Assembly: GCF_006345805.1 (NCBI RefSeq)
Contig: NW_021832511.1
Span: 1 to 30,601 of the forward strand
Direction of reading: 5' to 3'
Length of the DNA: 30,601 nucleotides
Source of the DNA: Octopus sinensis
Taxonomy: Eukaryota
Every line of letters begins with the position of its first letter. Within the stretch, counting starts at the first letter, position 1. This document shows, piece by piece, positions 3,356 to 30,601 of the stretch. A program made the position numbers and the translations under genes. Under the pieces are notes generated by a model that was not told the origin of the DNA, searched no databases, and saw nothing but the letters and a program-made list of their open reading frames with translations.

Positions 3356-3391
3356 CATACCCGTCTATCTATCAACATATACAAGATATAA

Positions 3392-3855
3392 AGGCGGCGA
3401 GCTGGCAGAAACGTTAGCACGCCGGGCGAAATGCTTAGCAGTATTTCGTCTGCCGTTACGTTTTGAGTTCAAATTCCGCCGAGGTCGACTTTGCCCTTCA
3501 TCCTTTCGGGGTCGATTAAATAAGTACCAGTTACGCACTGGGGTCGATATAATCGACTTAATCCCTTTGTCTGTCTTTGTTTGTCCCCTCAATGTTTAGC
3601 CCCTTGTGGGTAATAAAGAAATAGGTATTTCGTCTGCCGCTACATTCTGAGTTCAAATTCCGCCGAGGTCGACTTTGCCTTTCATCCTTTCGGGGTCGAT
3701 TAAATAAGTACCAGTTACGCACTGGGGTCGATATAATCGACTAAATCCGTTTGTCTGTCCTTGTTTCAGGTGGATGAAATAAGTACCAGTGGGGCACTGG
3801 GACCTACGCAATGCATTTACCCACATCCGCTGAAATTACTGACCGTCTGTCAATT
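3392..3855 (+). mobile_element. SINE family G with an internal 184-bp repeated unit (unit starts 3441 and 3625)
   Basis: A-box-like tggcagaaacgttagc (3403) and B-box gagttcaaattcc (3465). The unit ends gccccttgtgggtaataaagaaatag and rejoins gtatttcgtctgccg. A diverged alternative tail follows at ~3770-3855. Confidence 0.85.
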
Positions 3856-3880
3856 TGAAATCAATATTTACAGACATAGA

Positions 3881-4092
3881 GGCAGGGAGCTAGCAGGATG
3901 GTTAGCATGCTGGGCAAAATGCCTGACAGCATTTCTTTCTTCTTTACCTTCTAAGCTCAAACGCTGCCGGGATCGACTTTGTCTTTCATCCTTTCAGGGT
4001 CAATAAAATTAGAACCAGTTGAACACTGGAGTCGATGTCATGGAGTTTCTCCCGTCACCGAAATTGCTGGCCTTGTGCCAAAATTTGAAACT
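3881..4092 (+). mobile_element. Diverged SINE family G copy with the alternative tail (..aaattgctggccttgtgccaaaatttgaaac)
   Basis: Collinear by eye with the 3392 head and body. Confidence 0.75.
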
Positions 4093-6289
4093 AATATATA
4101 TATATATATGTAGACAGGTTTATGTGTTTACCTGTGTGGATTATTTGTGTATTTAAATCTTCACTTGTCTTCATCGCCCATTGAATTCTGGGAAGTATTA
4201 TGGGGGAATATTCCTTAAGCCCGTCTTCCATCGAGTCCCGTCACAATCAATCGTCTCCAAATGATTCAGCTGGAATCCGAAGACAGGCCAACCGAGTTCA
4301 TAGATGTTATCCAAACAATTTGCTCATGGTCTCCCTCTGGATTTCCTGTCAGTTGGTTTTGCTCGTAAAACCTGTTCATCGATTCTTTCCTGAAACATTT
4401 TAAACACATTTCCGTAGTATCGGAGCTGTGATCTCCCAATTCGAAGAAGAGGCTTCTAGTAGTTTGTCCTCTGTAGCTCAAATAGCTGAATGATATAATT
4501 TTGCAAGAAGTGTTATAGAGTAATCTCTCTTTAGTAAGTTTCTCGGAGATTATATTTCATGAGAAGTAATTCTTAATTATTCAAGAAGCTTCGCGTTTCT
4601 CTTGGAAGTTTCTAGAATGTCTAGCGTTCCATTAATAAAAACAGTTTGCTTGCCCTGCTCTTTGCTTTTTTGTCGATTAGACTCAGAGCCATTCACGTCG
4701 TTACTATGCCTGTCTATTTCTCTATGCCACATTACTAAAAACCACTATTTAGCTGTTATTTCTAAATTTCTGAACTTTCTTGCATAGATTATTTCATTCA
4801 ATTAGTTTCTACATTTTGATTATGTTTCATCGACAACCAGTGACTAAAATATATTTTATGTAATAAATATATTGTTCCTAAATTCATTCTTCTTCTCTGT
4901 AAGAATTCTTCTAAGATACATGCAGCATTTCTAAACATATATTCACCCTACAGGCCCTACCAGGGACACCTCTCTGATCTGCAGGCTACGCATTCAATAG
5001 AGTAACCTATCTCCAAAGACTATTCGGAAGAGCCCCCATTTCGGCCGTTTGTATTCACGATCGTATTCATTCGATTATTACCCTAGAGGACCAGAACTGC
5101 CCCCGTTTATTCTACTTCCCTCATATACTTGAAGCTACGACAATGGAGTTCTTTCATTGCCGTCAATGTGTATTATACTGAGCACCACAACAGTTCACCG
5201 TCTGTGGCTATAAGAGTTATTCACTGATTTGTAATCAAGAAAGATCATGACAATAATTGATTCCGCAGCACTTCGACAAAGGACGTGGTCACATGTTGGT
5301 GTGTAGAGAACTGCGGCTGCTGATGTCCACGTGTTTTTTGCAGCTGATATGCTGAACACCTCAAGAGAAAGAAAAAACTCTGACTGTTTGATCCACCATA
5401 TAAGATAATCTTGCGAGGTTATGTTCATTTATGTTGCATCCTCTGGTGTCTCACACAAAATATGCCCTCTGGCAAGAGAAAGTCAAACCGTTCTATTTGT
5501 ATGAGAGTGCAAAAGATCGTCAAAGTTGTTGAATATCCCTCCAGAGCACCTTTAAGTGGTTGCGTGTAGATGTTTGTCAGATGTCTGTCGTGCACCATCT
5601 ACTCAAACTCAGATGGAGGGTACGTTTTCCTTTTTACTTTCTATAAGCACCACTTGGTGCTCCGTGGTTGGTGGCTGTAGATAGGGAGTTTACTTGATTC
5701 TTCTACGTCTCATATGAAGGTGTAGCGAATGTTATGTTTATTATTTGGCTGTCTAGGGTTAGGTAGCTGCAAATTGGCGTATTTTGCCTGTTTTCTGCAA
5801 GTAGTCACATGACCATACCCGTTCGTGCCAATTGGATGCTTTAAGTCATTGAAACAGACCGATGGCCAGAGCAGCAAATGTGTGGTCTGTTTTGAGCTAA
5901 CAGATGGCTATAAATAAAGAATTTCTTTTGAGATAGCCAGAGAGCAGAGAATTGTCACCAGAGATATTTGACGCCATGCTTTGTATTTACCCCTCACACA
6001 TCCCCATGTACAAGCTGCACTGGGAACCAATGTATTTTTCTTAACAGAATCATTCGTACCTTTGGAACAGAAGCACTACTATATTCTTTTGTGTTAGTTT
6101 CATCATGTAGTGTCTCACATTTTGAAATACTTGCAATTTGTATTTTTACTGCTAATGTCTGTTTCGCTTGATATATTTCCGAAATTAAACGTTTTAATAT
6201 ACAAAATATACTTCACATTATTATATACGTTAATGCAAAAAAATATTGTTTATTGACAATCTTCAAAATGATCACTGCAGTAATGGAAA

Positions 6290-6717
6290 GACCAATGCGA
6301 ACTTGCTAAGGCAGTTATGAAAGGCTATCAAGACCAAACACCTAGCAAAACTGATGAATGGGGTTTTGTTTCATTAGGACAATGCTTCAGCACACATGTC
6401 CTTGGTTTTAATGGCTGCTGTGCGTGACCGGCTTTGAACTGGTTGCTCACCCTCCCTATGTTAGTGATTTGGTTCCATCTGGTTATTATCTGTTTCCCAA
6501 CATAGGAAAACACTCAGCTGTGATGATGACGTCTTGTCTCCTGTTAATGACCATTTTGACCAACAGAACAGCTTCTTCGCCAGTGTGATCCGTCGCTGCA
6601 ACTACTTATGGAAGTGTGTGGACAGTAAGAGGAACTACTTCAAAAAATTAACCTCATTTGGTCCCATTCCATGAGAGTGTCTTGCTCAGCCTATGAACAT
6701 TTCAGCCGACCCCCATA
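6290..6717 (+). pseudogene. Degenerate mariner (Tc1/mariner) transposase C-terminus and right end
   Basis: Manual translation gives GVLFH*DNASAH, ELVAHPPYVSDLVPSGYYLFPN (cf. HPPYSPDLAPSDYYLFP) and WKCVDSKRNY, with stops and frameshifts. It ends near TA. Confidence 0.85.

Positions 6718-10080: not shown

Positions 10081-10085
<5 letters not shown>
9833..10085 (+). mobile_element. 5'-truncated SINE family R copy
   Basis: Collinear with 2812-3068, flanked by (TA)n. Confidence 0.85.
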
Positions 10086-10110
<25 letters not shown>

Positions 10111-10111
<1 letters not shown>

Positions 10112-10278
10112 TTCTTTACTGCCCACAAGGGGCTAAACATAGAGGGGACAAACGGATTAAGTCGATTACATCGATCTCAGTACGAAACTGATACTTTATT
10201 TGTCGACCCCGAAAGGATGAAAGGCAAAGTCGACCTCGGCGGAATTTGAACTCAGAACGTAACGACAGACGAAATACG
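10111..10278 (-). mobile_element. 3' part of the SINE family G copy that hosts the Tx1 insertion (B box and tail)
   Basis: Reverse complement of the 3441-3621 unit; B box at 10241-10253; TSD copy at 10263-10278. Confidence 0.85.
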
Positions 10279-10523
10279 AATTTCTTTATTGCCCACCGGG
10301 GGCCAAACATAGATATGGACAGTACAACTGATGGGATCAGTGAATCGATATGATTTTACATAAATGTGACATCAAAAATAAAATACAATACATAAAAATC
10401 GAATGGAATACACAGTACAAAAACAATACAAATGAAGCGATGATCAAGTTACGCTCCGATCCCACAAGCCCCGATCTACCGCTGATACCTTTTTATTTTT
10501 CCTTTTTTTTTTTCCTCGTCTAT

Positions 10524-13500
10524 TCACACGGTTCCTTGCACGCACAACACTCGTGCAACATACTTCCATCTCTTTTGGAACGTACACTCTGACAGACACC
10601 TCTTCTCCAGCCACAGTTTCCTTTTCAAATGAAAAGAAAAAAAGGATCGTAAATTGTCACCAGAGATAAAGTTGCCTGTCTTAATTCCTTTTATCCTAGT
10701 ATTCCATACAGCCTCTTTTGTTATTGCTACAACCGTGAGAAAACAATTCTTACCTTCGTTCGTTAGAACTCCCGGTGGGTCAATTTTTATAATTGACTCA
10801 GTCGACAGCCGTACTCTTCCTTCGCCGGACAACAGATGTTCAGCATAAGCCCACATTTCAGTTATCTCCGGACACTGAACAATAGCGTGAGGGACGGTTC
10901 CCTGTCCCCACCGCATCTTGGACAGGTCGGCGACTGACGTTTACCATGTCTTGCGAGCTTATCCCAAACGGGCAAGGCACCTCTGTAGCATTGCCAGGTT
11001 AAGGACTTTTGGAAGTTGTCCAACGTTCTCAACCCGAATGTACGATGAAACAAGCTGTCCAGTTGAATAAATTCCGAGACCTAGAGTCGACCCCAGGCCA
11101 TCGTCGCATTCAGACTCTACCAACCCACTATATAAAATCCGTGTGGAACCCCCACCGCTGGCGTTGCCCGAGCGCCGGAACAGCAAGAGGGCCTTACGGC
11201 ACTCTTTATGCCACTCACTCGACCTCGGTCTACGAGAACACCAGGCTTCCTGTTCGCAAAAACTCTTGAACTCAGGGAACATTTGTCTGGCCAGCTGAGA
11301 CCACACCCGTTCACTATCCAGGAGAATCCAGAGGTGCCTCAACCTCAACGCATGTCTGCGCATCATTAACCAAGGCATCCCTAAACCTCCATTTAAAGGC
11401 TTTTGACAGCAGACAGAGCGTTTCACAAGTGGCGACCTGCCCTTCCACAAAAAGCGAAAGAGCTGTCTCTCCAACCTGATCAACCACGAATCCGGACAGG
11501 GCACGACAGTCAGGCGGTAGGTAATGACCAATGCGATAAACACATTGGCCACTTCCGCCCTCCCTTTCAGGGATAGCCACCGCCAAGACCAAGTCTTGAC
11601 TACTGCAGCCACCCTGCTCAATACCTCCGTCCAGTTCTTCTCTATCTGGAGGCCTGGTCCAAACCAGACTCCCAGCAACTTAACCGGTCCCTCCGTCCAG
11701 CGCCTAACAACACTGTCTGAAGGCATCGACTTGCCAACCCAGGTGCCGAGCTGCAAGCCGACCGACTTTTCCCGGTTAATCTTTGCTCCTGCTACCTCCT
11801 CGTAAGCCTCAATAGTCTTACCTACTTCACGTAGGCGTACCACTGTGGTTACACTGATAGTGATATCATCCGCGAAAGCCGTAACAAACTCCTCTAGTCC
11901 TGGTTCTCTCGGGATGCCACTCAACCTTTGCAGTAATGGCTCGAGAGCCATCACATACAAAAGTGGTGAAAGCGGACATCCTTGACGAACCGAGCGTCTG
12001 ATGCAGAACGGCTTCGAAAGGAAACCGTTCACCCGAACTATCGAGTCAATGTTGTGGTACAAAGCGATAAACCACCTGAGGAAGCCAAGGCCCAGGCCAA
12101 ACCGCGCAAGTACAGTCGCTAGGTATCGATGGTCAACCCTATCAAAAGCTTTAGACTGGTCCAAATGCACCAATTCCCCACCTTTGCCAGATTTATTACC
12201 AAACCTCTCTATGGTATAGCGAATAAGATGGAGGGTATCCTGAATGGTTCTGCCTGGGATGGCACATGTCTGTGCCTCCCCGACTATACCATTCGCGACA
12301 CGCGCCAACCTTTTTGCTAGAACCTTGGCCAAAATCTTCACTTCTGCGTTTAACAGAGTGATGGGCCTGAAATTCTCTAGAACGTCCCCCTTGTCCGGGT
12401 CCTTTCTGACCAACGTCACTACTCCCCGGCGCACAGATCTGGGGATAAACCCATTCTGTTTCCAGTTCGCGTACACGTCAGTCAGTAGTTGCCCGAACAA
12501 GTCTGGCATACATTTATACAGCTCGTACGGAAGACCATCAAGTCCCGGTGACTTACCCGCTTTACAATCGGCCAAAGCCTCCATCACCTCCTCAAGTGTG
12601 ATTGGCCCTTCGCAAGACTCCGCATCCGACCCCGAGAGGCACCGCAGCCCGGTAAGAAAGTCCTCGAGGGCTCTTTCACCACCAGGACCGCCGTCACCCC
12701 CGAACAGCTGGGCGAAGTACTCCCGAAAGACCTCACACATTTTCTCGGGTTCGTTTATCAAGACACCATTTTGATTCGTCAAAGACCGAATAGAGGAACT
12801 ATTTCCTTGCCGAGCTTCCACCACTCGGGCCCATCCAGCGGCTTTGATTCCTTCACTTCCCATTGCACGTAACTTAGCTCTGGTAATACTTCCCATGTGG
12901 TGGGCTTCAAGATGCTGGTTTAACTCCAGTCTTTTCACCCTCGCTTGGTCTGTATTACCAGTCCTCCAGGCTTCTTCTAGTTCCTTAACTAGACCATCTC
13001 CTATTTTACGTCCCTTCTTAGCTAAACTTATGCTAAACCTAATAGACTCATATTTGATGGCTCTTTTTAGGGCGTACCACCATTTGTTATTAATGATGGT
13101 ACCTGTTAATGCCCTCTGTATTAACATCTTGATCCGCTTTCTGTACTCCTCAATCGCCAAAAGGGACGTATTGAGTTTCCAGTAGCCAGATCCCTGTCTA
13201 TGCAACTTATCTACCGTCAGTTTACAGGTAACCATCTTGTGGTCACTGTAGCTGACTAGAAAAAACTGTGGACACTCAACTATGGACTTATCTTTTTCTC
13301 TAATTAAAATCCTATCTAGATATGTTCTGGTAGACCCGTCACTATTTGACCACGTCCACTGTGGAGTGTTCGGGTGCTCCAACCTATATGGATCTGCTAG
13401 CTGAAATTGACTTAGCAGATCCCGAAAGCCTGTGTTACATTTTCTGTTCATGTTCGAGTTTGAGCCAACACAATCTGTGTGTGCTGCACATATTGTATTA

Positions 13501-13925
13501 GAGTCTCCTAACACTACTAGTGAATGCGACGTGGCTAGGAACTTTCCTAGGCCACGAAAATATTCAGTTTGCGGGCCAATAATGTTTGGTGCATAAATAG
13601 CGACCAGCCTGATTGTCTTGCCACAACTGAATGTCAAGTCGAGAACGACCAGCCTGCCTTCTGGGTCAGAAAAAACCAACTTTTTCTCGGCTACCCGGTT
13701 TCTTTTTAGTAGGACCAACACCCCACCCCCACCTCCCGCCCGACTCGGAGAAACGTACTTCTCGTAGCCGTTCAGGAGGGGGAGCAGATCTCTTGGCCCC
13801 TTCACCCGGGTTTCCGTTGCAACAATTACATCCAAATTTCTCGACCTGATGTCATTCAGAAAGCGTCCTTGCTTCCAGCTTGACAACAGGCCATGAACAT
13901 TTAAACAACCAATGTGAATAGCCAT
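10524..13925 (-). pseudogene. Tx1 ORF2: apurinic-like endonuclease + reverse transcriptase + C-terminal zinc motif, with two 1-bp frameshifts (~11075, ~10895)
   Basis: Endonuclease motifs GCLNVHGL, ATET, LGDSN, LDRI, SDH. RT motifs KSPGLDGLPYELY, FRPITLLN, LDQSKAFDRVDH, RQGCPLSP, FADD. The pieces 10959..13928, 10862..11053 and 10524..10916 join as CPRCG..TVPHAIVQC. Confidence 0.9.
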
Positions 13926-13935
13926 CACTTACCTG

Positions 13936-15463
13936 TTAATTAGGATTGTCCGGTGGAGGGGGACCCTCCACCTTTTTTTTATCCAGGGTCGGAGGTGGAC
14001 GGTCTTGGGAAATAGATTTGTCAAAATCCCGTCTCACCACCGACACAGAATTATCAGGTGGAGGGGGAATCTCCACCTTTTCCTTTTCTCGCGGGATCGG
14101 AGCTGGTAATCCATGAAATATCGACTTGTTAAAATCTAATCTCAATGAAGATACAGTCTTTCTGTACTTATTTTGTAGAATTCTATAAGTCTTATTTGAG
14201 ACTTCATATATGTCGTAATTGATAAATTCCTCTGAAAGGTTATCAATTTTTTTTTACAGTCTTTATGAGTTGAATGTCTCTCATGAGCTCAGTATCTTTA
14301 GTGTATACGGCTATTATGCCTTTTTCTTCTTTTTCTCTTCTGGCAGTCTTTTTGGTCGTTGTTCTGTAGTAGTCGCCGCTCTCGGCTGGGTTGCTGGTTG
14401 TATTTTTCTTTTGTTTGTTGTTTTTTTCTCATCTGTTTCTTCTTTATCTTCTTCCTCTTTGTCTTTTTTCTCCTCTTCCTCCTCTTCTTCATTTTCCTTG
14501 CAGTTCCTTCGAATGTGGCCTAATTGACCACATAAAAAACATCGAGGTTTTCGGCCCTCAACAAACACCACGAGGTTCTCCTCCCCTACCTCAATTGTCT
14601 CAGGAATTGTTTGAATTATTTTAGGGTCCGCTTGAATGAGAAGATTAATTGTTTTACCATCCCAGCGTGGGTTTTCCGTAGCGGTAGCCTGGAGGAGAGT
14701 AATTTTTTCTACCTCTTTGATTAGGACTGCCGCCAACAACCACATAGGTTCGACCTCTGGCGGGACCCTTGTAATTTTTATTCGCGACGTCCTCATCCCC
14801 ATATAATATGGTATTAACTCCACGTCGTTCGTTTTCAACGTTTCCACTGAGTTCTTGTGTGCTATTTCTTTATTGGTGAACCTTACTTCCACCGTTCCGA
14901 ATTTTTTCCTCTTCTCAGAAATACTACGTCGCCCAATATTGGCTTTAAGCACTTTTCTATTTTCTCTTCTGACATTCTTTCAATTTTTCTATTTTGTAGA
15001 CAATATGTTTTGAAAATTATTGTTTTTTGCTTTTCTTCCTGTAATAACTTTTGCGGAGGTTCAATTTTCACACTGTTGTCATTTATTTCCATCATTTTGC
15101 TGTATTTCATAATTTCGCTTTTATTCGTCGACAGTATCTGGGTTCCACCCCCAGCAGCCAACGCAAAACTTTTTTTTCCATTTTTTGGTTCTATCTGGAT
15201 GCTAGGCACATCAATTATTCTCTTCGACACAATGCCTTTGTTCTCTGGCAAAGTCGGAAACTCTTCTGGTGAAAGTTCTGACGAGCTCTCAGACACATCT
15301 CCAAAAATATCAAATATATTATCCTCTCTGCTATTCTTCTTGTAGCGGGGGAAACCCCTATTTCCTTGTCTGTAGTTGGCTCCTCGCCGGACATGTATTT
15401 CCTCCTCTCAACAGGAGAAACAAGTATTTCTGCTCCAACGGTAGGCTCCATGCTAGACGACAT
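13936..15463 (-). pseudogene. Tx1 ORF1 (gag-like, CCHC zinc knuckle), reconstructed across four 1-bp frameshifts (~510 codons)
   Basis: CFLCGQLGHIRRNC lies in 14314..14952. Joined pieces: MSSSMEPT (ATG 15463); 14883..15296; 14314..14952; KGIIAVYTKDTELMRDIQLIKTV; an open frame from ~14255 to the TAA at 13936, 10 nt before the ORF2 ATG. Confidence 0.75.
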
Positions 15464-15626
15464 TCTTCCCTCCAAAGGGGGAATGAACAACGCGTGCTAC
15501 CACAAGCACTAAGTGTTTTCATTGAAAACTCCAACAGTTAAGTTATTCAACAGTTTAACAAGAAACAACAGTTGTTAACAATATTAACACCACGAAACAG
15601 CAATTCTTACTTCACGAACACATGTG

Positions 15627-15690
15627 CGGCAGACGAAATACGGCTACGCATTCCGCCCGGCGTGCTAACCACTCTGCCAGCTCGCCGCCT
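15627..15690 (-). mobile_element. 5' head (A box) of the host SINE family G copy
   Basis: Minus strand aggcggcgagctggcagagtggttagcacgccgggcggaatgcgtagccgtatttcgtctgccg matches 3392-3455. Confidence 0.9.
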
Positions 15691-16529
15691 AATATATATA
15701 TATATATATAATATCGGGAATTATCGCATACCGTATTATTTCAATATAATCTATTCTGGTTTATAGATGAAAAGTGCCGCCCCTCCAAAAGTGCCCTAAC
15801 CCTAACCCCTACCTCTCCCTTAGCTATTCTTGTGTGCTAGGGGTATCTGTAGAGGCTTAATTATCCGTATAATACTCTCTTCAAACCTATTGAAAAGTTT
15901 CTTATTTCTTTCAATTCTCCCATGTCAGATAAAATGCTAACACAAAAAATGAAAAGACACACAGTGAAAATTATGAGGAAACAAAGTCAGTAAGGAGGAG
16001 GGCAAAACTGTATAAATATGTCAACTGGTGTCTGCAAAAGATTTCACTAAGAAATACCCAGTTTTCTGCAAGTTATGAGGTAACAAAGGCGACTCGTGTG
16101 AATTTTAAAAAACTTTTCTCTCTCTCCACCCTCGCCACATCAGGAAAACGTTCCACTTTAAATTCTGATATAAATGAAACGTATACCATCAGAAGCATAT
16201 GTGTTGAAAATTTCGAGTTAAAGAATCCATTTTTCCGAAAGTTATGAGGAAACAAAGTCGATAGGAACACACTTGTGTCCGTATGCCCGGTGGTACATGA
16301 TCTATAGAATTTATTCTTTTATTCCTTGAAGCGTTTCAGCCCAAAGATTGTGGCCATGCTGGAGCATCGCCGGTAAAAGTAGGCGATGGGTGCATATCCA
16401 TATCTCAGGAATACTTGCACTTTCTTCAGTACCACATGGAACCCAGAAAAATATATTTAACATTTCTTTGTTCGCTGTGTTCAGGATGAAAATATATTTA
16501 CGAACTAAAGCGGGAGTATAACTTGGGAC

Positions 16530-19790: not shown

Positions 19791-20640
19791 TGTTCTTTTA
19801 TGTTTTTCATTATTTAAACTCTTCGGAGGAAGAAGGATCTGGTTTCTAACAAAGATACAAAGCTCCATTGTTAGAATGTAGATAAGGAAAACAAGGTCAT
19901 ATTTTAAACCCGAGAAATGTCTTGCGAAGCTTTAGTGTTCCGCTTACAGGTTGCATTTCTAAAATGCGAATCATTTGGTTGATTTCTTTTTCCGAAAATC
20001 CAAGCTTATCCAGGCTGACAGTTAGACATTTACTTAACCAAGTGCTCCGATTATTATTGGTATACATGTAAGCTGGAGGTTTCGAAGCAGATGTCCATAG
20101 TTAGCTTCTGACTCTTTGATTTTCAAACAGATATATTCACATCAGATAATTTCTATGACGGTGCATACTTTTACTAGTCCGTCCCAAACAATATCCGGTC
20201 TGTTATGCTCACACTTGACACATCATTTGATGGCAATGTTCTACAAGTATTCCTTCAGCTGATATTTGTCTAAGTATTCAATAACAGGGGGATTCACTAT
20301 ATTTATTCTAGGACAGTCTTTTTTCCGGCGGGTATTGTATATTGTTTTTGCAACAGCGTCGTGTCGCATAGGGAGGTAGTACCTCGATGATATTTTTAAG
20401 CAGCTGTTATCACATTCGTGATGTCTTCCACGGAAATATGACATAATCTACATTTACGGTTGCATCTTGGAACTCCAAGGGCTTCACTGTCTCTTGTTCT
20501 TGGATTGCAAATGCATAGGCTTCGAAGTGTGATTTGATGTAGCGGTCACGAGTTTAAGAGAAGCTTCGCTTCATGTCAATGGTACTGTCTTTGAGAGATT
20601 CATTAGTTTTTTTCAACATCCAATCATAATTATTTCTACT
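19791..20640 (-). pseudogene. RLE-type (R4/Dong-like) LINE 3' fragment, copy B, degenerate
   Basis: SHFEAYAFAIQEQE, SCLKISSRYYLPMRHDAVAKTIYN (RHD motif) and YGHLLRNLQL..IPIIIGALG..GFSEKEI..VSGTLKLRKTFLGF. Confidence 0.75.
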
Positions 20641-20642
20641 TT

Positions 20643-20937
20643 AGGCACAAGGCCTTGAAAATTTTGAAGGGAAGAGGGCTAGTCGATTACATCGACTCCG
20701 GTGCGTAACTGGTACTTATTTTATCGACCCCGAAAGGATGAAAGGCAAAGTCGACCTCGGTGGAATTTGAACTCAGAACGTAACGGTAGACGAAATACCT
20801 ATTTCTTTACTACCCACAAGGGGCTAAACACAGAGAGGACAAACAAGGACAGACAAACGGATTAAGTCGATTATATCGACCCCAGTGCGCAACTGGTACT
20901 TATTTAATCGACCCCGAAAGGATGAAAGGCAAAGTGG
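20643..20937 (-). mobile_element. SINE family G composite: a unit with the Tx1-like tail joined at the target site to a body with the alternative tail
   Basis: Junction cggtagacgaaatac|ctatttctttactacccacaagggg at 20784-20822. The outer body ends in the alternative tail (plus strand ttaggcacaaggcc at 20641). Confidence 0.8.
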
Positions 20938-20945
20938 ACATATAC

Positions 20946-21420
20946 ATACTACTGCTCCCAATTGTGGTCCCCACAGAGTGAAAAACTAATTGCGGAATTT
21001 GAAGCGATCCAACGCCACTTCACAAAGACTATAGACTCAGTAAAACACATGAGCTACTAGGAGAGATTGAGGGAACTGGGACTCTACTCTCTGAAGAGGA
21101 GACGTGAGAGATATTCAGTGCTATACATGAGGAAAATAATGGAGAGTCTGGCTCCAAATTTCGGGATTGAAATCTACAACAATCCCCGAACTGGACAACA
21201 CTGCACAGTACCAAAGTTCCATCTTCGCCATCGAGGATACGAAACCAATATTGTAATAGTTTGGGTTTCAAAGGACCACAACTTTTTAATGCCCTACGAC
21301 AGAACATCAGGGATTTGCAAGGTGTAGACATAGAAGTCTTCAAAAAACGTCTAGACAGTTTTTTTTACCTGCAATTCCAGATGAAACCACATCGCGACAG
21401 GAGGCACAAAGTGCGACAAC
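20946..21420 (+). pseudogene. CR1/L2-group RT C-terminal fragment, degenerate
   Basis: YCSQLWSPQSEKLIAEFEAIQRHFTK, ERLRELGLYSLKRRRERY and NSLGFKGPQLFNAL..FKKRLDSF, with stops and frameshifts. Confidence 0.8.
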
Positions 21421-21446
21421 GTCATATATATATATATATATATATA

Positions 21447-22615
21447 TTATTATAAAAGGCAGATTTTATCTGCCTCCCTTTGTCAGTTATAGAAATCTAC
21501 AATATAGGATTTCTTCAATTACAATTTACCTAGCATTTTTAAGAGTAGAATGCATCGGATTTTGCCAGGTCCAGTTTTTAAAATTTAAACTCCAATTAAG
21601 CAAAATTTACAGAAAACTCACATTCTGGTGTGTATGTCAAATGCTTTTCTTAGTCTGGTTTACAGCACACGCAAACGCACACACACAGTTTGCAACGAAT
21701 AAAGTGAAACTAGATGTAATATTTGTTTCTGTCTATCACGCTGATAGATACATGAGTAAAATGTATGGCAAGCTAACAGATAAGAGTGAGTGAAAATGTT
21801 CTTGGAAGAGAGTAAATAGCGACAGAGTGATTTGAGGAAGACTAAACTGAAAGTATGAAACAGTGTTTATGTATAAACAGACGACACTTATATAAACCCT
21901 TTCGTTACCAAACCGCCCGAATTTACCTATTCATATTTAAATGAGAATATCAGAGTAAATCTCTTTAGTACATTCGTGAAAACACGTATTATACTTCGAA
22001 AACACTTCAGATACATTTTTGTACAAAAATCGAAGTGTAATTTTAATTCCGTGAATTATGGGAGATTTTTTTCCGAAATTTGTTCCTATTGTGTTTTCAA
22101 AATTTGTAATTCTGACAAAAAATGGATACGAATTTCATTATATCAAGCAACGAGTCAGAATTCGAAGGATTTTCTACTGAAGACCTTCATAAATCTAACT
22201 CTATGACTGAAAAAAAAAGCATCTTTATATAAGAGTGAAGTTGTGTGTCTGTCTCCTACGATTTAGATTCGTAACTACTCCCACATTTTGCGGTGCAGTT
22301 TAACCAAAAGCGGGTATCTTATAGTCGTGATTCATATCGAGCCCTTCTGGGTATTAGCGCGCGTCTACGATGAGTCTACGATTTAAAAAAAAGTTACCAT
22401 CATATTTTTCCATTTAATGCATTTTTTTCGCTTTTATATAAGGGAAGTAACTCTCTAAAAATATCTACGATGTGTCAACGATTTAAAAAAAAATTTACCT
22501 TAATTTTTTTTCAATTTTTAATGCATTTTTTTGCTATTTTTTGGCTATAACTCTCTAAAAATGCTTATATAGTTATTTCCCTTACAACCCGAGCAACGCC
22601 GGGCGATACTGCTAG
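21447..22615 (+). mobile_element. Non-autonomous Helitron unit 1 (type-A 5' end; internal type-B 5' end at 22222; 3' hairpin + CTAG)
   Basis: 5' region shared with 7165; A|TCTTTATATAAGAG at 22222; cccgagcaacgccgggcgatactgCTAG ending at 22615. Confidence 0.8.
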
Positions 22616-23092: not shown

Positions 23093-23443
23093 AAAGTTTT
23101 TTAGGACGAATATAAGACCTAAAGTATATCCAAGTAGCAGAAAGATCGCCCAAAAGTGTATATAGATATTTAAATGTATTTATATATTCATCTATACACA
23201 GGTGTATGTATAATGTGTGTATATATTTCCATAGACGTAACCATTCACTCCGCACAAAGTTTTTTAGGACGAAAATAAGATCTAAAGTTATCTCTAAGAA
23301 ACAGAAAGATCGCCCAAAAGTGTATATAGATATTTAAATGTATTTATATATTCATCTATACACACATGTATGTATAATGTGCGTGTATATATTTCCATAG
23401 AGGTAACCATTCAATCCATACAAAGTTTTTTAGGACGAAAATA
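23093..23443 (+). repeat. ~164-bp tandem repeat, about 2.1 copies, inside Helitron unit 2
   Basis: aagttttttaggacgaa recurs at ~23093, ~23257 and ~23422, with collinear units. Confidence 0.8.
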
Positions 23444-24287: not shown

Positions 24288-24777
24288 CATTATTATTAAT
24301 ATTTTCAATAGTACTTTTATTATTACTATTATTATTATGATTATTAATAATATTATTATTAGAATGTTATTATCATTATCAGCCTTATTATTATTATTAT
24401 TACTATTATTACTTATATTATTATTGTTGTTATTATTAATATTATTATTATTATTATCATTATTATCATTGTTATTATTATTATTATTATTATTATTAAT
24501 ATTATTTTTTTTATTCTTATCATTATGATTTATATTAATATTATTATTATTATTATTTTTATTATCATTATTATTATTATTATTATTAATGTTATTATCA
24601 TTATTATTATAATCTTTTTCATGATTCTTTTAATATTATTATTATTTTTATTATCATTACAATTATTAATAATATTATGATTATTATTATCATTATCATT
24701 ATTAATATTATTATCATTAATAATATTGCTATTATTATTATTGTTGTTAATAATATTAATATTATTATTACTATTAT

Positions 24778-24808
<31 letters not shown>

Positions 24809-25106
24809 ATCACTATCATTATTATTATTATTTTCAATAGTATTATTATTAGTATTATCATTATTATTATTATGAATATTATTAACATTATTATTGATAT
24901 TAACATTATTATTAACATGATCATTATCATTATTATTAGTATTATTAACATTATCATTATCAGTATTATTATTATTATTATTGTTGTTATTATTAAAACA
25001 TTTATTAATATAATTATTATTATTATTACTATTATTATTATCATTATTATTACTATTATTCTTATTATGAATATTAATATTATTATTATTATTATTTTTA
25101 TTATTC

Positions 25107-25140
<34 letters not shown>

Positions 25141-25590
25141 TTTCATTATCATTATTATTATTACTATTAATAATAATAATAATATTACTATTATAATTAT
25201 TGTTATTGTTAATATTATTAATGTTATTGTCATTATTATCATTATTATTATCATTAATGTTATTATTATTACAATTATTAATAATATTATGATTATTATT
25301 ATTATCATCATTATTATTAATATTATTATTTATATTATGATTATTAATATTATTATTAATTTTATTATTATTATTATTATTATCATTATTAATAGTATTA
25401 TTATTAATATATTTATTATTATTATCATCATTATCATTATTATTATATTATTATTTATATTATGATTATTAATATTATTATTAATTTTATTATTATTATT
25501 ATTATTATCATTATTAATAGTATTATTATTAATATATTTATTATTATTATCATCATTATCATTATTATTAATATTATTATTATTATCATT
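24288..25590. repeat. Long degenerate (ATT)n low-complexity field
   Basis: Direct inspection; it is the source of the poly-Ile ORFs. Confidence 0.95.
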
Positions 25591-26599
25591 CAGTAGTTTT
25601 ATTTTTATAGCGTACTTTCACTTCACTACCGAGCGCAGCTCTGTGTGCCTTGGGTATGTGCTGTGATTTGTTGTGATGCTCTGATGGTTATTGTATGGAA
25701 AGTGTTCTGCGTAGGATCTGTGCAGTGCCTAGTAGTGCAATTTTCTGTATGTTATATGTGTTTGTAAGTCCTGGTGTTTTTGTTATGTATTTGTCTGAAT
25801 ATTTTTTTATCATGCCTAATGCACCTACTATGATAGGAATTGTTTCTGTTTTCAGGTTCCACATTCTAGTTACCTCTATTTCCAGGTCTTTGTATTTTGA
25901 GAGTTTCTCCATTTCTTTTAGAGACACGTTGTCATCTGCCGGTATTGATACATCAATTAGAAAGCATTTTTTTTCTTCATGATCTATGACAACTATATCT
26001 GGTCTGTTGGCCTTAATTTCTCTATCTGTGTGTATTGGCATATCCCAGACTATGGTTGCTTTCTCGTTTTCTGTGACCTTTTCCGGTGTGTGCCTATACC
26101 ATCTTTTTTCTGTTGTTATTTCATAATGTTAGCATAGCTTCCAGTGTATGTAGGTTCCAACTCTGTCATGTCTGCGAATATATTCCTTCTTAGCTAGGAC
26201 TGGGCAGCCAGAGATAATATGATTTATTGTTTTTTGTCCATCTCCACATATTCTGCAGTTACTTGTTATATTTCTTTTCATTACATGTTTTTGGTAATTT
26301 CTGGTGGGGAGGCTTTGGTCTTGTGCTGCAATTAAAAATCCCTCTATCTCTGCTTTGAGTCCTGAGCTTCTCAACCGTTGCTGGGATTTTTCTTTGTCTA
26401 TTTCTTTTGCGTTTAGTTTAGTCCAGTATTTACCATGAAGGGGCTTTTCTTGCCATCGTTTTATCATGGTTCGTTGCTGTTCTATTTTTAGTTTGGATTT
26501 CATTTGTTTTATAGCTTTTGTTGTTTCTTCATCTTCTTCTTCTTCTTCTTCATGTTTATTAGGTGGGATGATTTCTTGTTTGTATTTGTCAGCTTCCTT
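25591..26599 (-). mobile_element. 5'-truncated RLE-type LINE of R4/Dong type embedded in (TAA)n, with one premature stop
   Basis: KPLHGKY..EGFLIAAQDQSLPTRNY, CCHC motif CRICGDGQKTINHIISGC, RHD and the RLE motif RPDIVVID..KCFLIDVSIP...KLSKY. The TAA at 26129 is in frame with 25688..26041. The 3' UTR ends ..aaaactactgaa + TGA(TAA)n. Confidence 0.88.
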
Positions 26600-26611
26600 T
26601 ATTATTATTAC

Positions 26612-26654
<43 letters not shown>

Positions 26655-26765
26655 AATAATAATATTATAGTTATTGTTGTTGTTGTTGTTTTTCTTGTTT
26701 TTATTATTGTTATTGCTATTGTTATTGTTTTTGTTGTTGTTCTTGTTGTTGTTATTATTATTATC

Positions 26766-26797
<32 letters not shown>

Positions 26798-26875
26798 TAT
26801 CATAATTATTTGATTATTATTATTATTATTATCATCATTGTTATTATTATTATTATTATTATTATTAATATTATC

Positions 26876-26907
<32 letters not shown>

Positions 26908-26933
26908 CATTATTATTAATAATATAATTATTA

Positions 26934-26988
<55 letters not shown>

Positions 26989-26991
26989 TAT
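26600..26991. repeat. (ATT)n/(GTT)n low-complexity field
   Basis: Direct inspection. Confidence 0.95.
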
Positions 26992-27000
26992 AAGTCTGAT

Positions 27001-27528
27001 GGCTATGAAACCACCCTTTCGAAATCATCCAACAAAGAATCGAATACCGCAGCTCATAGTAGAGAACATTTTGCCCACTGAAGATCAGCAATAATTTATG
27101 GTAAAGCTGAATCCACCTGTGATACAGGCATAAACCACCTAAAAGAAGACATTAATTTTGTTTCCAATTTAGTTGGAGAATTGTTTTCTGTCAACGAGAA
27201 TGTCAGTATCCATAAGGTCGCTCGGCTAGGAAGATACCAAGCGAACTCAACCTCAGATACTAGACCGCGCCCAATAAGAGTAATCTTTGCTTCCGATCAG
27301 GAGGCTTCAACCTTTCTGAACAGAGCTCAGACGCATGCCTGGGAGGACCCCAATATGGGTTTTCGCGAGGAATACTCACTGAGAGAATGAATTCGCCGGA
27401 GAAACCTAATATCCGAACTAAAGATGAGAAAACAGATGGGAGAGAAGGGTTTATGCATCCAAGATGGACAAATAATCAAGTCCTACCTCTGGTCGCATGC
27501 TGTAGTGCTGACAGGGAAAGTGAATTGA
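27001..27528 (+). pseudogene. CR1-group ORF1 C-terminal half with two in-frame TGA codons (27079, 27388)
   Basis: The single frame reads *RSAIIYGKAES..HKVARLGR..RPRPIRVIF..EEYSLRE*IRRRNLISELKMRKQMGEKGLCIQDGQIIK..VN*. This fits the usual 'N.II.G..E / RLG..RPRPI.V / R..R..L..EL..R...GE..L.I..G.I' ORF1 pattern. Confidence 0.7.
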
Positions 27529-30413
27529 GGGCGAATCGAAGTAAAGTAGATACCCCCGCCAACGATGCTATCTCTGATACCCCTTATTCTGCTTGTTCCC
27601 CAACTCCCGCCCCTCAAACTTCACAGCTCAGCATCGTCTATACCAACTCGTGCTCCTTATTCCCAAAGTTCAGCAAACTATTTACACTGGCCATACGTGA
27701 CTCCCCTGATGTGATAGCTATCACCGAGACTTGGCTGACTCCAGCAGTAAAGGACTTAGAAATCCACCTACAGGGCTACGTCCTCTTCAGATGTGACAGA
27801 GAAAAAAGGCGAGGTGGAAGTGTTGCTGTGTATGTTAAATCTGATCACAAACCGTCCAGCGGTATTCTACCCACTAATGCTCAACCTACAACAAAATTCG
27901 ATGCCGTCTATTGCAAGCTGAGCCTATCCGAGTTTTGCCTGCCTGTGTTAGCTGTCTACAGGCCGCCTCTCGCCGACCCCCAGGACGATGCTCATTTACT
28001 CGAAGCGATAAGATTCGTTTCAGCTTCGCATGACTGTTTGATACTAGGAGACTTCAACGCACCCACGATCGATTGGCCCGCATCAATTTGTACATCATCT
28101 TCCCGGTTCGGCCAGGCCCTTCTTGACGTGGCTGAAGATTGTTTTCTATCGCAACATGTTGAAGATCTGACAAGGCATCGGTCTGGGCAGCAGCCATCTA
28201 TGCTGGATCTGGTATTCTCCCGCTATCCAAGATCAGTGTCAGACGTATCTGTGTGCGCCCCTCTTGCCAAGAGTGATCATGCGGTCCTGAAGTTCGTCAT
28301 GCACACAACTTTTTCTACGCCCACGACTACTTCGCTGCCACGTAGAGTCTTCTCTGCAATTAATCTTGAAATTCTAACCGAGGCTTCCGCGCTTCTGGAC
28401 TGGCGATCCTTGATGACATTGTCCTCAGTTGACGAACTATGGTCATCCCTCAAAGCATATGTAATCTGGTTGACTGACCAGGCAGTTCCCGTTGGACTTC
28501 CCAAGAAGAAGAAACACAAGCCCTGGGTGACGAAGAAGGTTAAACGAGAACTTCGACTCAGAGATATTGCTTGGGCTGAATTCAAAAATCTGGATTCGAC
28601 TGCAGCTTTTGAGGTGTACAAAACTCAACGAGACCGAGCCATGAAAATTGAAAAGGAAGAACGCTTCAGTTATGAATACAAAATCGCGGCAAATGCCAGT
28701 AGCAATCCAAAAACCTTCTTTGCCCATGTCCAACGGAATTCCCGCTTGAACAACCAGATTACAACGTTGGTAGACTCAACAGGTGTATCGATTGAGGACC
28801 CTTATCAACAGAGTCAATTATTTGCCGAGGCTTTTTCAACTATTTTCAAACAAGATGACGGTCGTGAACCCCCTCCATTTGATAGATCGGTACCTCCAAT
28901 GCTTCGATTGGTCATCACGCGGGATGAGGTCAAACGTGTTATTCAAGGCCGCCTCAATGTCAACAAGGGTCACGGCCCTGACGGCTTACACCCACGGGTT
29001 ATCAAAGCGTTGGCTCTGGTCATCTGCGAGCCCTTAACACATCTATTCAATATGTCATTGGCGACGGGTGTTATACCTGCGGACTGGAGAACAGCGATGA
29101 TCTGCCCAATTTTCAAGAAAGGGAGCCGCGAAGACCCGCTTAACTACCGACCGGTTTCCCTTACATCAATAATCAGCAAGATGTTCGAAACCATCCTTAA
29201 GAAAAGTATGATACACCACCTCCAAAACACAGCCTCCATCTCTGATTCCCAACACGGCTTCGTGCCGAAGAGATCATGCTTGACCAACTTACTGGTAATG
29301 GAAGAATTGGTGACGCGCATCCTCGATGATAGTGATGCTGTTGACATCGTTTTATTGGACTTTGCCAAAGCTTTTGACTCGGTAAACCACCGCCTATTAC
29401 TTGTCAAGCTTCAAGCATATAGTTTCCATCCGGATATTGTACGATGGGTTGGGGCCTTCCTCTCAGATCGCTTCTTCCAAGTCCAAGTTAATGGTTCGCG
29501 GTCCGACGTCTCCAGTGCGAGCAGTGGCGTGCCTCAAGGTTCAGTGCTTGGGCCCTTGTTGTTCTTAGTCTTCATAAATGACTTGCCCGACGACCTCACG
29601 CAACACACCCTTCTATTTGCCGACGATATCAAACTGGTCGCTCCTCGCGGTGATATAGAGGATTTTCGTCGATGCCTCCACCAAATTTGGAGGTGGTCTA
29701 ACGAATGGGACCTGTGTCTGAACGTGTCAAAGTGCTGTCATCTGCCTGTTGGCTCTCCTCCTGCAACTCAACTTGATTTCGAGCCGGGTCGTCTGCTGCT
29801 AGAGAGGACCGATCAGGTAAAGGACCTGGGTATCTTGGTGGATTCCTCCTTTTCGCCTTCGGCCCAGTGCGTCCATGCTGCCAACAAAGCACGCGGAATT
29901 CTGTTCTTGATTCGACGGTCATTCGGAATGCTCACAGCAGCCATATTCCTACCACTCTATGTCACGCTGGTCAGACCGATATTGGAATACGGGATTCAAG
30001 CCTCTTCTCCTTATCTCCTCAAAGACATACAGCATCTCAAAAGAGTCCAGAAGCTGGCTACCCGCATGGTTCATGGTCTCAAAAATTTGTCCTATGAAGA
30101 AAGGCTGAGGACGCTCAACCTTTATTCTCTAGAAAAACGCTGCCGCCGTGGTGATCTCATTCTCGCCCACATCATAAGCGGAAAGTGTAACCTCTCGAAA
30201 GAGCTGTTCTTCACTCCTGCTCCAGAGCGTCGGCTGCGGGGTCATTCCGAAAAGCTCTACCTGCGACGATTTCATCTCAATCGAAGGAGAGGGGCTTTCT
30301 CCGTCCGGGTTGCGGATCCGTGGAACAAGCTGCCAGACGAGATGGTGAAGATGGCGACGACCGCTTTGTTCAAAGCCTCCCTTGACCTCAAGTGGCCTGA
30401 ACTCTTTACATGA
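27453..30413 (+). CDS. CR1-group ORF2: APE endonuclease + reverse transcriptase, uninterrupted frame (start codon uncertain)
   Basis: Endonuclease motifs YTNSCSL, ITETWL, GDFNAP, LDLVF, SDH. RT motifs GPDGLHPR, NYRPVSLTS, QHGF, DFAKAFDSV, GVPQGSVLGP, FADD, KDLG. The C-terminus reads RGH..FSVRV..WNKLP. Confidence 0.88.
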   Translation: MHPRWTNNQVLPLVACCSADRESELRANRSKVDTPANDAISDTPYSACSPTPAPQTSQLSIVYTNSCSLFPKFSKLFTLAIRDSPDVIAITETWLTPAVKDLEIHLQGYVLFRCDREKRRGGSVAVYVKSDHKPSSGILPTNAQPTTKFDAVYCKLSLSEFCLPVLAVYRPPLADPQDDAHLLEAIRFVSASHDCLILGDFNAPTIDWPASICTSSSRFGQALLDVAEDCFLSQHVEDLTRHRSGQQPSMLDLVFSRYPRSVSDVSVCAPLAKSDHAVLKFVMHTTFSTPTTTSLPRRVFSAINLEILTEASALLDWRSLMTLSSVDELWSSLKAYVIWLTDQAVPVGLPKKKKHKPWVTKKVKRELRLRDIAWAEFKNLDSTAAFEVYKTQRDRAMKIEKEERFSYEYKIAANASSNPKTFFAHVQRNSRLNNQITTLVDSTGVSIEDPYQQSQLFAEAFSTIFKQDDGREPPPFDRSVPPMLRLVITRDEVKRVIQGRLNVNKGHGPDGLHPRVIKALALVICEPLTHLFNMSLATGVIPADWRTAMICPIFKKGSREDPLNYRPVSLTSIISKMFETILKKSMIHHLQNTASISDSQHGFVPKRSCLTNLLVMEELVTRILDDSDAVDIVLLDFAKAFDSVNHRLLLVKLQAYSFHPDIVRWVGAFLSDRFFQVQVNGSRSDVSSASSGVPQGSVLGPLLFLVFINDLPDDLTQHTLLFADDIKLVAPRGDIEDFRRCLHQIWRWSNEWDLCLNVSKCCHLPVGSPPATQLDFEPGRLLLERTDQVKDLGILVDSSFSPSAQCVHAANKARGILFLIRRSFGMLTAAIFLPLYVTLVRPILEYGIQASSPYLLKDIQHLKRVQKLATRMVHGLKNLSYEERLRTLNLYSLEKRCRRGDLILAHIISGKCNLSKELFFTPAPERRLRGHSEKLYLRRFHLNRRRGAFSVRVADPWNKLPDEMVKMATTALFKASLDLKWPELFT

Positions 30414-30493
30414 ACACCACCCTGTACTTAACTCCATGTCCCCTTACATGGCCTTGCTATTTGCTTTTGAGCCAAATTAACTAACTAACTAAC

Positions 30494-30601
30494 ATTATCA
30501 TTATTATTATTATTTTTGTTATCATTATTATTTTTAATATTGTTATTATTATTATTATTATCATTATTATTATTATTGTTGTTGTTATCATTATTATTAT
30601 T
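30494..30601. repeat. (ATT)n low-complexity field
   Basis: Direct inspection. Confidence 0.95.

Follow-up and report, generated by a model that had tools for sequence, protein, structure and literature searches.

We analysed a 30,601-nucleotide stretch of Octopus sinensis DNA (assembly GCF_006345805.1, contig NW_021832511.1, positions 1 to 30,601 of the forward strand; hereafter the window), in which a short interspersed element (SINE), here termed SINE B, and a Tx1-type long interspersed element (LINE) are joined to other SINE copies at one and the same nucleotide. The explanation that we favour, with moderate confidence, is targeted insertion, in which the short SINE and the LINE have repeatedly landed at this nucleotide within other SINE copies. 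In the best-supported account of such targeting, Tx1-type machinery would recognise a 3' hairpin that is shared by LINE and SINE RNA, and would prefer to nick DNA at the apex of a hairpin in the SINE head. The window is AT-rich and contains many microsatellites and retroelements. Positions within SINEs are numbered throughout on the SINE B consensus (positions 1-234), and the two SINE-on-SINE arrays in the window are referred to as array 1 and array 2.

Junctions of the SINE and the LINE with other SINE copies

A preliminary description of the window had noted that the tail end AAAGAAA is followed, after three nucleotides, by the same target sequence at two SINE junctions and at the 3' junction of the Tx1 element. 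Scanning both strands of the whole window with the corresponding pattern AAAGAAANNNGTATTTCGTCT (AAAGAAA-NNN-GTATTTCGTCT) returned three exact matches. Junction 1 (3615..3635, + strand) and junction 2 (20788..20808, - strand) both read AAAGAAA-TA followed by G(49)-GTATTTCGTCT and have the spacer TAG, and the LINE 3' junction (10267..10287, - strand) has the spacer TTC. No match is expected in shuffled sequence, which is a weak null since the sequences concerned are repeats. The density of the target is a better null: it occurs about once per 10 kb in ~120 kb of octopus DNA, so that three or four independent matches to one nucleotide are far beyond chance.

In the most plausible reading, the three-nucleotide 'spacer' is made up of the two bases that end the tail (TA for the SINE, TT for the LINE) and of target position 49. 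The consensus has G at this position, and the SINE hosting the LINE has C, according to the 5' copy of the target duplication described below. TAG is then tail TA plus G49, and TTC is tail TT plus C49, which means that the LINE and both SINE junctions in the window share one cut, between positions 48 and 49 (48|49). The earlier observation of a common target and spacing is thus borne out and can be stated to the nucleotide.

Direct evidence of a cut within SINE DNA comes from the LINE insertion site. The LINE (10279..15626, - strand; 5.35 kb; 3' end ..ATGTTTGGCCCCCGGTGGGCAATAAAGAAATT) interrupts a copy of SINE B, the 5' part of which (positions 1-64) lies at 15627..15690 (- strand) and the 3' part of which (positions 49-234, ending ..GGGCAGTAAAGAAATA) lies at 10109..10278 (- strand). 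Positions 49-64 are present on both sides of the LINE, as CGTATTTCGTCTGCCG in the 5' copy (15627..15642, - strand) and, with one mismatch, as CGTATTTCGTCTGTCG in the 3' copy (10263..10278, - strand), forming a target-site duplication of 16 bp with the sequence CGTATTTCGTCTG[C/T]CG. Because this duplication of SINE positions surrounds the LINE, the DNA of a SINE was cut here. The whole SINE-LINE-SINE structure is bordered by (TA)n on both outer sides (15691-15710 before the host head, and 10084-10108 after the host tail), in keeping with the reservation made in the preliminary description that the copy at 10109-10278 ends in (TA)n and not in the target. This is the one copy of the LINE family observed in ~140 kb of octopod DNA, and it is located in the SINE target; the target choice of the family is read from this insertion together with the SINE junctions.

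Folding of the SINE head predicts a 12-bp hairpin in which positions 33-44 pair with positions 49-60 around the loop UAGC. The cut 48|49 falls on the boundary between the loop and the 3' arm of this predicted hairpin, and the duplicated segment corresponds to the 3' arm plus four bases. As a separate observation, the tail-target junction at 3615-3635 of the window creates an inverted repeat, GAAATA-GG-TATTTC, which mimics the resident head hairpin (positions 33-60; GCGAAATGC-TTAGCG-GTATTTCGTC), and the end of the tail resembles the 5' arm of that hairpin.

Array 1 (+ strand) begins with a full-length SINE B, unit 1 (3392 to about 3623-3625; positions 1-234 with the last base missing; tail ..GTTTAGCCCCTTGTGGGTAATAAAGAAATA). 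It continues with unit 2 (3624..3766, + strand), which covers SINE positions 49-191, belongs to the B type, as its B-specific segment 168-191 shows, and lacks a tail. The array is closed by the 3' half of an older, diverged A-type SINE (3767..3864, + strand) with the tail hairpin TGAC-CGTCT-GTCA at 3840-3852, and it is here that the preliminary description had correctly placed a diverged copy of an alternative tail. The fusion of unit 2 to the older SINE at 3766/3767 is possibly the result of deletion or recombination. A candidate duplication of ~20 bp flanks array 1, with a left copy ATCAACATATACAAGATATAA at 3371..3391 and a right copy ATCAATATTTACAGACATAG at 3860..3879; the two copies agree at 16 of 20 bases (p about 0.01 in a shuffling test), and no duplication is found between the units. 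Such an arrangement fits nested insertion and a single chimeric insertion equally. A separate diverged A-type SINE, 74% identical to B and with the tail ..TGGCCTTGTGCCAAAATTTGAAACTAA followed by (TA)n, lies at 3880..4098 (+ strand). A duplication 'sandwiched' between array 1 and this SINE was considered and rejected, as the similarity of the flanks is not significant (p = 0.55).

Array 2 (- strand) consists of an inner unit of SINE B (20800..20939; positions 93-234) and an outer unit of a different subfamily (20630..20799; positions 49-167; tail ..AGGCCTTGTGCCTAAAGTAGAAATAA). The 5' side of the inner unit is cut off by a 5'-truncated 3' fragment of a CR1/L2-like LINE (20940..21450, + strand; ..SY*ERLRELGLYSLKRRR..), which ends in (TA)n; the remainder of the SINE head was not found beyond this fragment (20940-21450). 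The tail of the outer unit (..GGCCTTGTGCCTAAAGTAGAAATAA) is distinct from that of the inner unit, as had been noted before, but it is a homologous variant, with the same stem and loop and with compensatory changes, rather than an unrelated sequence.

The units of both arrays were compared with each other and with a copy at L004, a locus on a chromosome of O. vulgaris. The other octopod loci cited below are L009, from a chromosome of O. bimaculoides, and the contigs L007, L008 and L010-L012. Over positions 93-167, the inner and outer units of array 2 are 92.0% identical, and the inner unit is 98.7-100% identical to the O. vulgaris L004 copy; over positions 50-167, the units of array 1 are 96.6% identical to each other, and unit 2 is 97.5% identical to the L004 copy. 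Duplication at the DNA level, by replication slippage or by unequal crossing-over between neighbouring SINEs, would agree with the appearance of the arrays as partial tandem repeats and with the 96.6% identity in array 1. However, array 2 has units that are only 92% identical and that differ in their tails, every unit has a closer relative elsewhere, even in another genome, and recombination of aligned repeats can neither join a tail to position 49 nor reproduce the register of the LINE. The preliminary description had named a closer similarity of inner and outer units to each other than to other copies as an outcome that would refute it, and this outcome is not observed. Judged from these identities, local duplication is excluded for array 2 and unsupported for array 1, and we regard it as highly improbable overall.

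It could also be supposed that a dimeric SINE (B plus positions 49-end) and a LINE with SINE-derived ends each formed once and were then copied, so that the junctions were inherited and not made anew. The two SINE junctions are indeed identical (AAAGAAATAGGTATTTCGTCT), the (TA)n tracts on both sides of the SINE-LINE-SINE structure look as if it had moved as a unit into (TA)n, and crocodilian Tx1 families with small-RNA-derived 5' ends are known. Against such amplified composites, the architecture varies between loci: array 1 is composed of B, B(49-191) and an old SINE, and array 2 of B and another subfamily (49-end), so that the outer unit is B-type with the B-specific segment 168-191 in one case and belongs to another subfamily, with another tail, in the other. 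Still other subfamilies take part in a further junction, in L008, the tail ends differently at the LINE junction (TT-C and not TA-G), and B also occurs as a monomer with its own duplications. At least three or four independent formations would still be needed, and we consider this explanation distinctly improbable. The fact that the array units are not closest relatives, together with the differing type of the outer units, argues against both local duplication and one amplified dimer, and in this small sample it argues that the array insertions were independent events, not copies of one amplified composite. The A-type copies of O. bimaculoides represent a subfamily other than that of the array 2 outer unit, and they offer no consensus for dating the outer unit relative to the inner one.

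The shared 3' hairpin and a proposed mechanism of insertion

SINE B is ~232 nt long and has a tRNA-like head, a CORE-like body and the 3' tail ..GTTTAGCCCCTTGTGGGYARTAAAGAAATA. By eye, the head contains an A-box-like motif (TGGCAGAGTGG) and a B-box-like motif (GAGTTCAAATTCC); the resemblance of the body to CORE-type SINEs is presumed and serves as a lead only. A peptide translated from the SINE is 90% identical to a 'Hypothetical predicted protein [Octopus vulgaris]', and near-identical copies of SINE B were found in O. vulgaris (L004) and O. bimaculoides (L009). Outside SINEs, B copies have the 3' end ..AAAGAAATA, which is followed by a target duplication of their own (21 bp in L004, 16-17 bp in L009 and ~25 bp in L007), and this range of 16-25 bp matches the 16 bp of the LINE insertion. 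SINE B thus has two properties of a LINE-dependent SINE, namely a 3' end homologous to a LINE of the same genome and target duplications of variable sequence.

Some minor observations concern SINE copies elsewhere. A member of this SINE superfamily, old and strongly diverged, lies at 1940-2115 of the window (+ strand; 71% identity over 93 nt). In L009, a SINE B copy contains a 10-N assembly gap (40785-40797) with the same ~55 nt on both sides, an assembly artefact that mimics a partial SINE duplication, and at about 69670-69700 of the same locus three or four telomere-type TTAGGG units lie within a SINE head, between two copies of GTGCTTAG.

The last 34-42 nt of the LINE match the tails of B with 85-90% identity, and the 3' end common to the two elements comprises a 4-bp hairpin with a 5-nt loop, followed by AATAAAGAAAT. 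A 4-bp stem, a 5-nt loop and an A-rich end are common to the tails of B, the LINE, the array 2 outer unit, the SINE at 3880 and the old 3' half at 3767-3864, while the stems themselves are compensatory variants (GCCC/GGGC, AGGC/GCCT, TGGC/GCCA and TGAC/GTCA). Across B, the LINE and the three A-type tails, pairing is retained in 28 of 28 cells, three of the four pairs change on both sides, and the pairing collapses in slid controls. A Tx1-like LINE on a Tara Oceans contig (L005), 39% identical in protein, has TGAC-CTTGT-GTCA near its 3' end (6566-6578). Judging by this covariation, the tails are best regarded as variants of one putative recognition element, and the variants are probably served by related LINEs. 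A MAFFT alignment paired the tail with head positions ~18-49, from which we draw no claim. The L005 element is itself complete, with open reading frames (ORFs) of 766 aa (ORF1) and 1151 aa (ORF2); the same 55 nt are found at both ends of its contig (1-55 and 6619-6674), so that either the element is tandemly arranged or the assembly has wrapped around.

The LINE in the window encodes an ORF1 (14314..14952, - strand; 212 aa as listed) with a CCHC zinc knuckle, and an ORF2 (10959..13928, - strand; 989 aa as listed) with apurinic/apyrimidinic (AP) endonuclease and reverse transcriptase domains (Exo_endo_phos and RVT_1 by Pfam). A frameshift in this copy places the C-terminal zinc-finger region in another frame downstream of about 10900. 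Among solved structures, the best relative of ORF2 is human L1 ORF2p (E = 1.6e-63), and the named database relatives of the LINE are 'Transposon TX1' proteins. Protein searches with ORF2 gave a best relative that is 59% identical (L001), on a contig that ends short of the ends of the element; no close relatives of the LINE proteins were found in the protein database searched. On the strength of the database names and of the 'L1-Tx1' class, which is reported as recently active in O. vulgaris (PMC13282606), the LINE is likely a member of the Tx1 group of the L1 superfamily.

In the mechanism that we propose for targeted insertion, the LINE reverse transcriptase presumably recognises the shared 3' end both on its own RNA and on SINE RNA. 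The LINE insertion implies a bottom-strand nick between SINE positions 48 and 49 and a top-strand cut about 16 nt further on; this 16-bp stagger, which is shown for the LINE, gives the duplication of positions 49-64. If SINE B RNA were copied at the same 48|49 nick, the new tail would become joined to position 49 of the resident SINE. The single-stranded top-strand overhang of the resident (positions 49-64) would be identical to positions 49-64 of the incoming element, and could thus anneal to the complementary DNA and prime synthesis of the second strand. The product would be a complete SINE seamlessly followed by a SINE from position 49, resembling a tandem repeat without any visible duplication. 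Homology-guided 5' joining of this kind, which we infer, fits the structure observed. The same tail also occurs beside TA-rich sequences of the form nnTAT(T/A)T, including (TA)n, and the SINE's own hairpin is best regarded as the preferred site among several.

As a tentative extension of this mechanism, which seems to us somewhat unlikely, insertion may form part of a self-renewing cycle of 'promoter capture'. The apex of the SINE-head hairpin would act as a landing pad, and the resident upstream half would supply an A box, so that even promoter-less, 5'-truncated copies would regain an RNA polymerase III promoter. Copies that belong to rival subfamilies would in this way become new B-type source genes, and their severed 3' halves would remain as dead sequence. 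If true, such a cycle could contribute to the octopus-specific expansion of SINEs, to the many arrays in head-to-tail order and, in octopus annotations, to the hundreds of 'SINE families' that defy classification.

Other octopod loci and the strength of the preference

Further octopod copies were sought with a junction-spanning antisense ORF as protein query, which led to SINE-derived ORFs and then to the contigs carrying them. Because a query that contained a junction led to the Logan contigs, and junctions were the reason for choosing the window, the fractions given below should not be interpreted as genome-wide estimates; L004 and L009 are less biased loci. A diverged junction was found in L008, a Logan assembly of an octopod run, where a B-type tail (..GGTAGAAAAAAAAATA) is joined to TTTGTCTTTACATTCTGAG.. 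at SINE positions ~51-53, compared with 48|49 for the SINE and LINE 3' junctions in the window; the inner and outer units belong to different subfamilies, other than those of arrays 1 and 2. By this count, three of the eight B-type SINE tails lie in the SINE target (array 1, array 2 and the L008 inner unit), or two of five if the contigs from the junction-containing query are left out.

Several candidates were rejected. An apparent junction at the protein level (P0069/L007) was not borne out by the DNA, which shows an ordinary insertion; its ~25-bp duplication happens to begin with sequence similar to the target. DNA pattern scans for the SINE core (22 nt) gave no matches in JGI metagenomes and none in viral contigs, collections that hold no octopus DNA, and a single match of the core in a haloarchaeon and a single match of the tail pattern in a viral contig were attributed to chance.

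A number of observations weigh against targeted insertion at this nucleotide, or restrict how far it reaches. The other five of the eight B-type tails are outside the target (window 10109 in (TA)n, L004, L009, the L008 outer unit and L007), and three of six B-type SINE copies occupy TA-rich sites that are not SINEs, with 16-25-bp duplications of their own. The downstream flanks have TAT(T/A)T in common (GGTATTTCG, AGTATATGT, TATATAT and AATAATAT). Eight intact GTATTTCGTCT targets without insertion are present in L004, L009 and L012; in the less biased L004 and L009, neither of the two B copies is in a SINE and seven intact targets are empty, the eighth being in L012, a contig from the junction-containing query.

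Tails also meet heads at positions other than 49. In the A-type arrays of O. bimaculoides, the tail meets the next head at position 1 (with a spacer of 0 or 13 nt), at ~11 or at ~22. At L009 66640-65990 (- strand), three A-type SINEs are arranged head to tail, one tail (..AAGAATATA) being directly joined to the head AGGCGGCG.. and another pair being separated by the 13-nt spacer, and further joins of a tail to a truncated head occur in L009 at ~4400 and ~69640. Among the Logan contigs, B-type tails meet heads at ~14-17 and ~22-26 in L011 and L012, and an A-type tail meets head position 1 after a ~10-nt spacer in L010. Joins at 1, ~11-17 and ~22-26 with little or no spacer are beyond what a single-site endonuclease can explain.

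The window itself adds to these difficulties. The 5' side, at which the joining step would show, is destroyed in array 2, and unit 2 of array 1, tailless and fused to an older SINE, is not predicted by the model. At the nick, the 3' end of the bottom strand (..GAAATACC) lacks complementarity to the RNA 3' end (..GAAAUA), so that priming would need either read-through RNA or no pairing. No tRNA is called in the SINE B head by ARAGORN or Rfam, and the total evidence for the site amounts to four junctions and a single LINE copy, which is a small sample.

Template jumping, the main rival explanation, would account for the arrays in another way. Each array would be one integration, during which the reverse transcriptase stops on one SINE RNA (at the RNA 5' end, at the hairpin loop 45-48 or at a base modified as in tRNA) and continues from the 3' end of another SINE RNA, so that the junctions would reflect RNA structure. 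L1 and R2 enzymes are both known to produce chimeric retrocopies by switching templates. A preprint is devoted to L1 chimeras (bioRxiv 10.1101/2025.02.02.635956). The junctions are free of spacers and the units are without individual duplications, as this explanation would have it; every unit after the first is truncated at its 5' end, and in several octopods the points of truncation recur (head positions ~11-17, ~22-26 and 49-53); position 49, as the first base of the hairpin 3' arm beside the loop, is a plausible stop; and array 1 as a whole is apparently flanked by one ~20-bp duplication. The 16-bp duplication of positions 49-64 around the LINE, however, is the signature of a staggered cut, and would otherwise call for a prior co-transcript of a SINE head and the LINE, which itself requires an earlier insertion at the site. 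Moreover, the SINE junctions stand in exactly the register of the LINE, and the missing tail of unit 2 in array 1 is unlike the outcome of a jump to an RNA 3' end. We therefore consider template jumping unlikely.

Head-to-tail SINE arrays are common in octopods, position 49 is one hot spot among several, and targeting is a preference, not a rule. The proposal in the preliminary description that Tx1 machinery inserts SINE RNA into other copies of the same SINE agrees with the shared 3' end, with the LINE duplication of positions 49-64 and with the junctions at the same nucleotide; it does not extend to the tails found elsewhere (five of eight), the empty targets or the joins at other head positions.

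Relation to known systems and neighbouring elements

Crocodilian SINEU families share the Mariner-N4_AMi target of Tx1-Mar LINEs, with a preference that is graded by family (90%, 23% and 13% of copies), and tandem insertions occur (Kojima 2015, PMC4494074). In both systems, SINEs that depend on a Tx1-group LINE share its insertion positions inside another repeat, the preference is graded, tandem insertions are found, and both elements can include sequence taken from the target or from small RNAs. The crocodilian target, however, is an unrelated DNA transposon, Mariner-N4_AMi, the SINE heads are derived from U1/U2, and tandem copies sandwich a visible duplication, whereas the octopus target lies inside the SINE family's own tRNA-like head, no duplication can be seen between units, so that the array looks like a partial tandem repeat, and the shared 3' hairpin tail is evident. 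By analogy, the octopus case appears to be the same kind of system; new is the target within the SINE family itself, at a hairpin apex. We found no description of a target site within octopus SINEs in the searchable literature, although Repbase entries for octopus Tx1 elements and SINEs may carry such notes. The suggestion in the preliminary description that a self-targeting SINE is undescribed stands to this extent, but SINEs that follow the target of a Tx1 LINE into a transposon, with tandem insertions, were known before (Kojima 2015, PMC4494074).

Dependence of SINEs on LINEs through a shared structured 3' end is a general principle (PMC3747384). The eel pair UnaL2/UnaSINE1, of the 'stringent' type of recognition, is similar to the octopus pair in that the tail of the SINE, homologous to the 3' end of the LINE, has a small conserved stem-loop followed by a short terminal motif. 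To our knowledge, no such pair is known to select a site within its own SINE. Tx1-group LINEs are classic AP-endonuclease LINEs with target choice, their targets including other transposons and microsatellites; target-specific members are Tx1L, found inside Tx1D in Xenopus laevis, Keno (U2), Mutsu (5S), and Kibi and Koshi (microsatellites), alongside which work by Christensen et al. in 2000 is reportedly named. The octopus LINE is comparable in having an AP-type endonuclease that would choose a sequence in a repeat or microsatellite, and its (TA)n and TA-rich secondary sites recall the microsatellite-specific members, but its specificity is read from one insertion plus SINE junctions and its likely clade from database names. 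U6-L1 chimeras and the template jumping of R2 resemble the arrays as spacer-free head-to-tail fusions with a 5'-truncated downstream partner; they differ in that no DNA target is needed and that one duplication surrounds the chimera, and the LINE's duplication of positions 49-64 is not readily explained by them.

The OR2 or 'tRNA-Core' SINEs of octopus are similar to SINE B in being abundant and in having a tRNA-like head and a CORE-like body, although identity with SINE B is only a lead. OR2 is said to go back to Ohshima and Okada in 1994. It is listed as a CORE SINE (PMC4758252). More than a tenth of octopus genomes consists of SINEs (~11.6% in O. vulgaris), which have expanded specifically in the octopus lineage and whose mode of spread there has hardly been described. 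If true, the preference of a LINE/SINE pair for a site within its own SINE would amount to a safe haven that grows with each insertion, and such a self-site preference would explain the frequent head-to-tail SINE arrays of octopus. It would also be a warning for annotation, as many 'dimeric' or 'novel' SINE consensus sequences would then be nested insertions. The apex of a 12-bp hairpin would be a compact substrate for studies of how site choice arises in an AP endonuclease of the L1 type. Should the preference prove weak across the genome, what remains would be an ordinary LINE/SINE pair that favours TA-rich targets.

The window contains a second LINE (26993-30493), with an intact ORF of 1008 aa (27387-30413, + strand) that has AP-endonuclease and reverse transcriptase domains, and with the 3' end (TAAC)4; its closest database relatives are only 37% identical. 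This LINE sits inside an (ATT)n microsatellite, (ATT)n-type repeats being present at 26599-26991 and 30494-30601, and it may target microsatellites. At 24289-25590, about 435 units make up an (ATT)n tract of 1.3 kb whose GC content is about 18%, and a Tx1/L1-like zf-RVT fragment (~26130-26420, - strand) adjoins neighbouring (TTA)n. Tandem repeats with long units are found at 23093-23443 (164 bp x 2.1 copies, 92% matches) and at 22364-22562 (100 bp x 2.0 copies, 80% matches).

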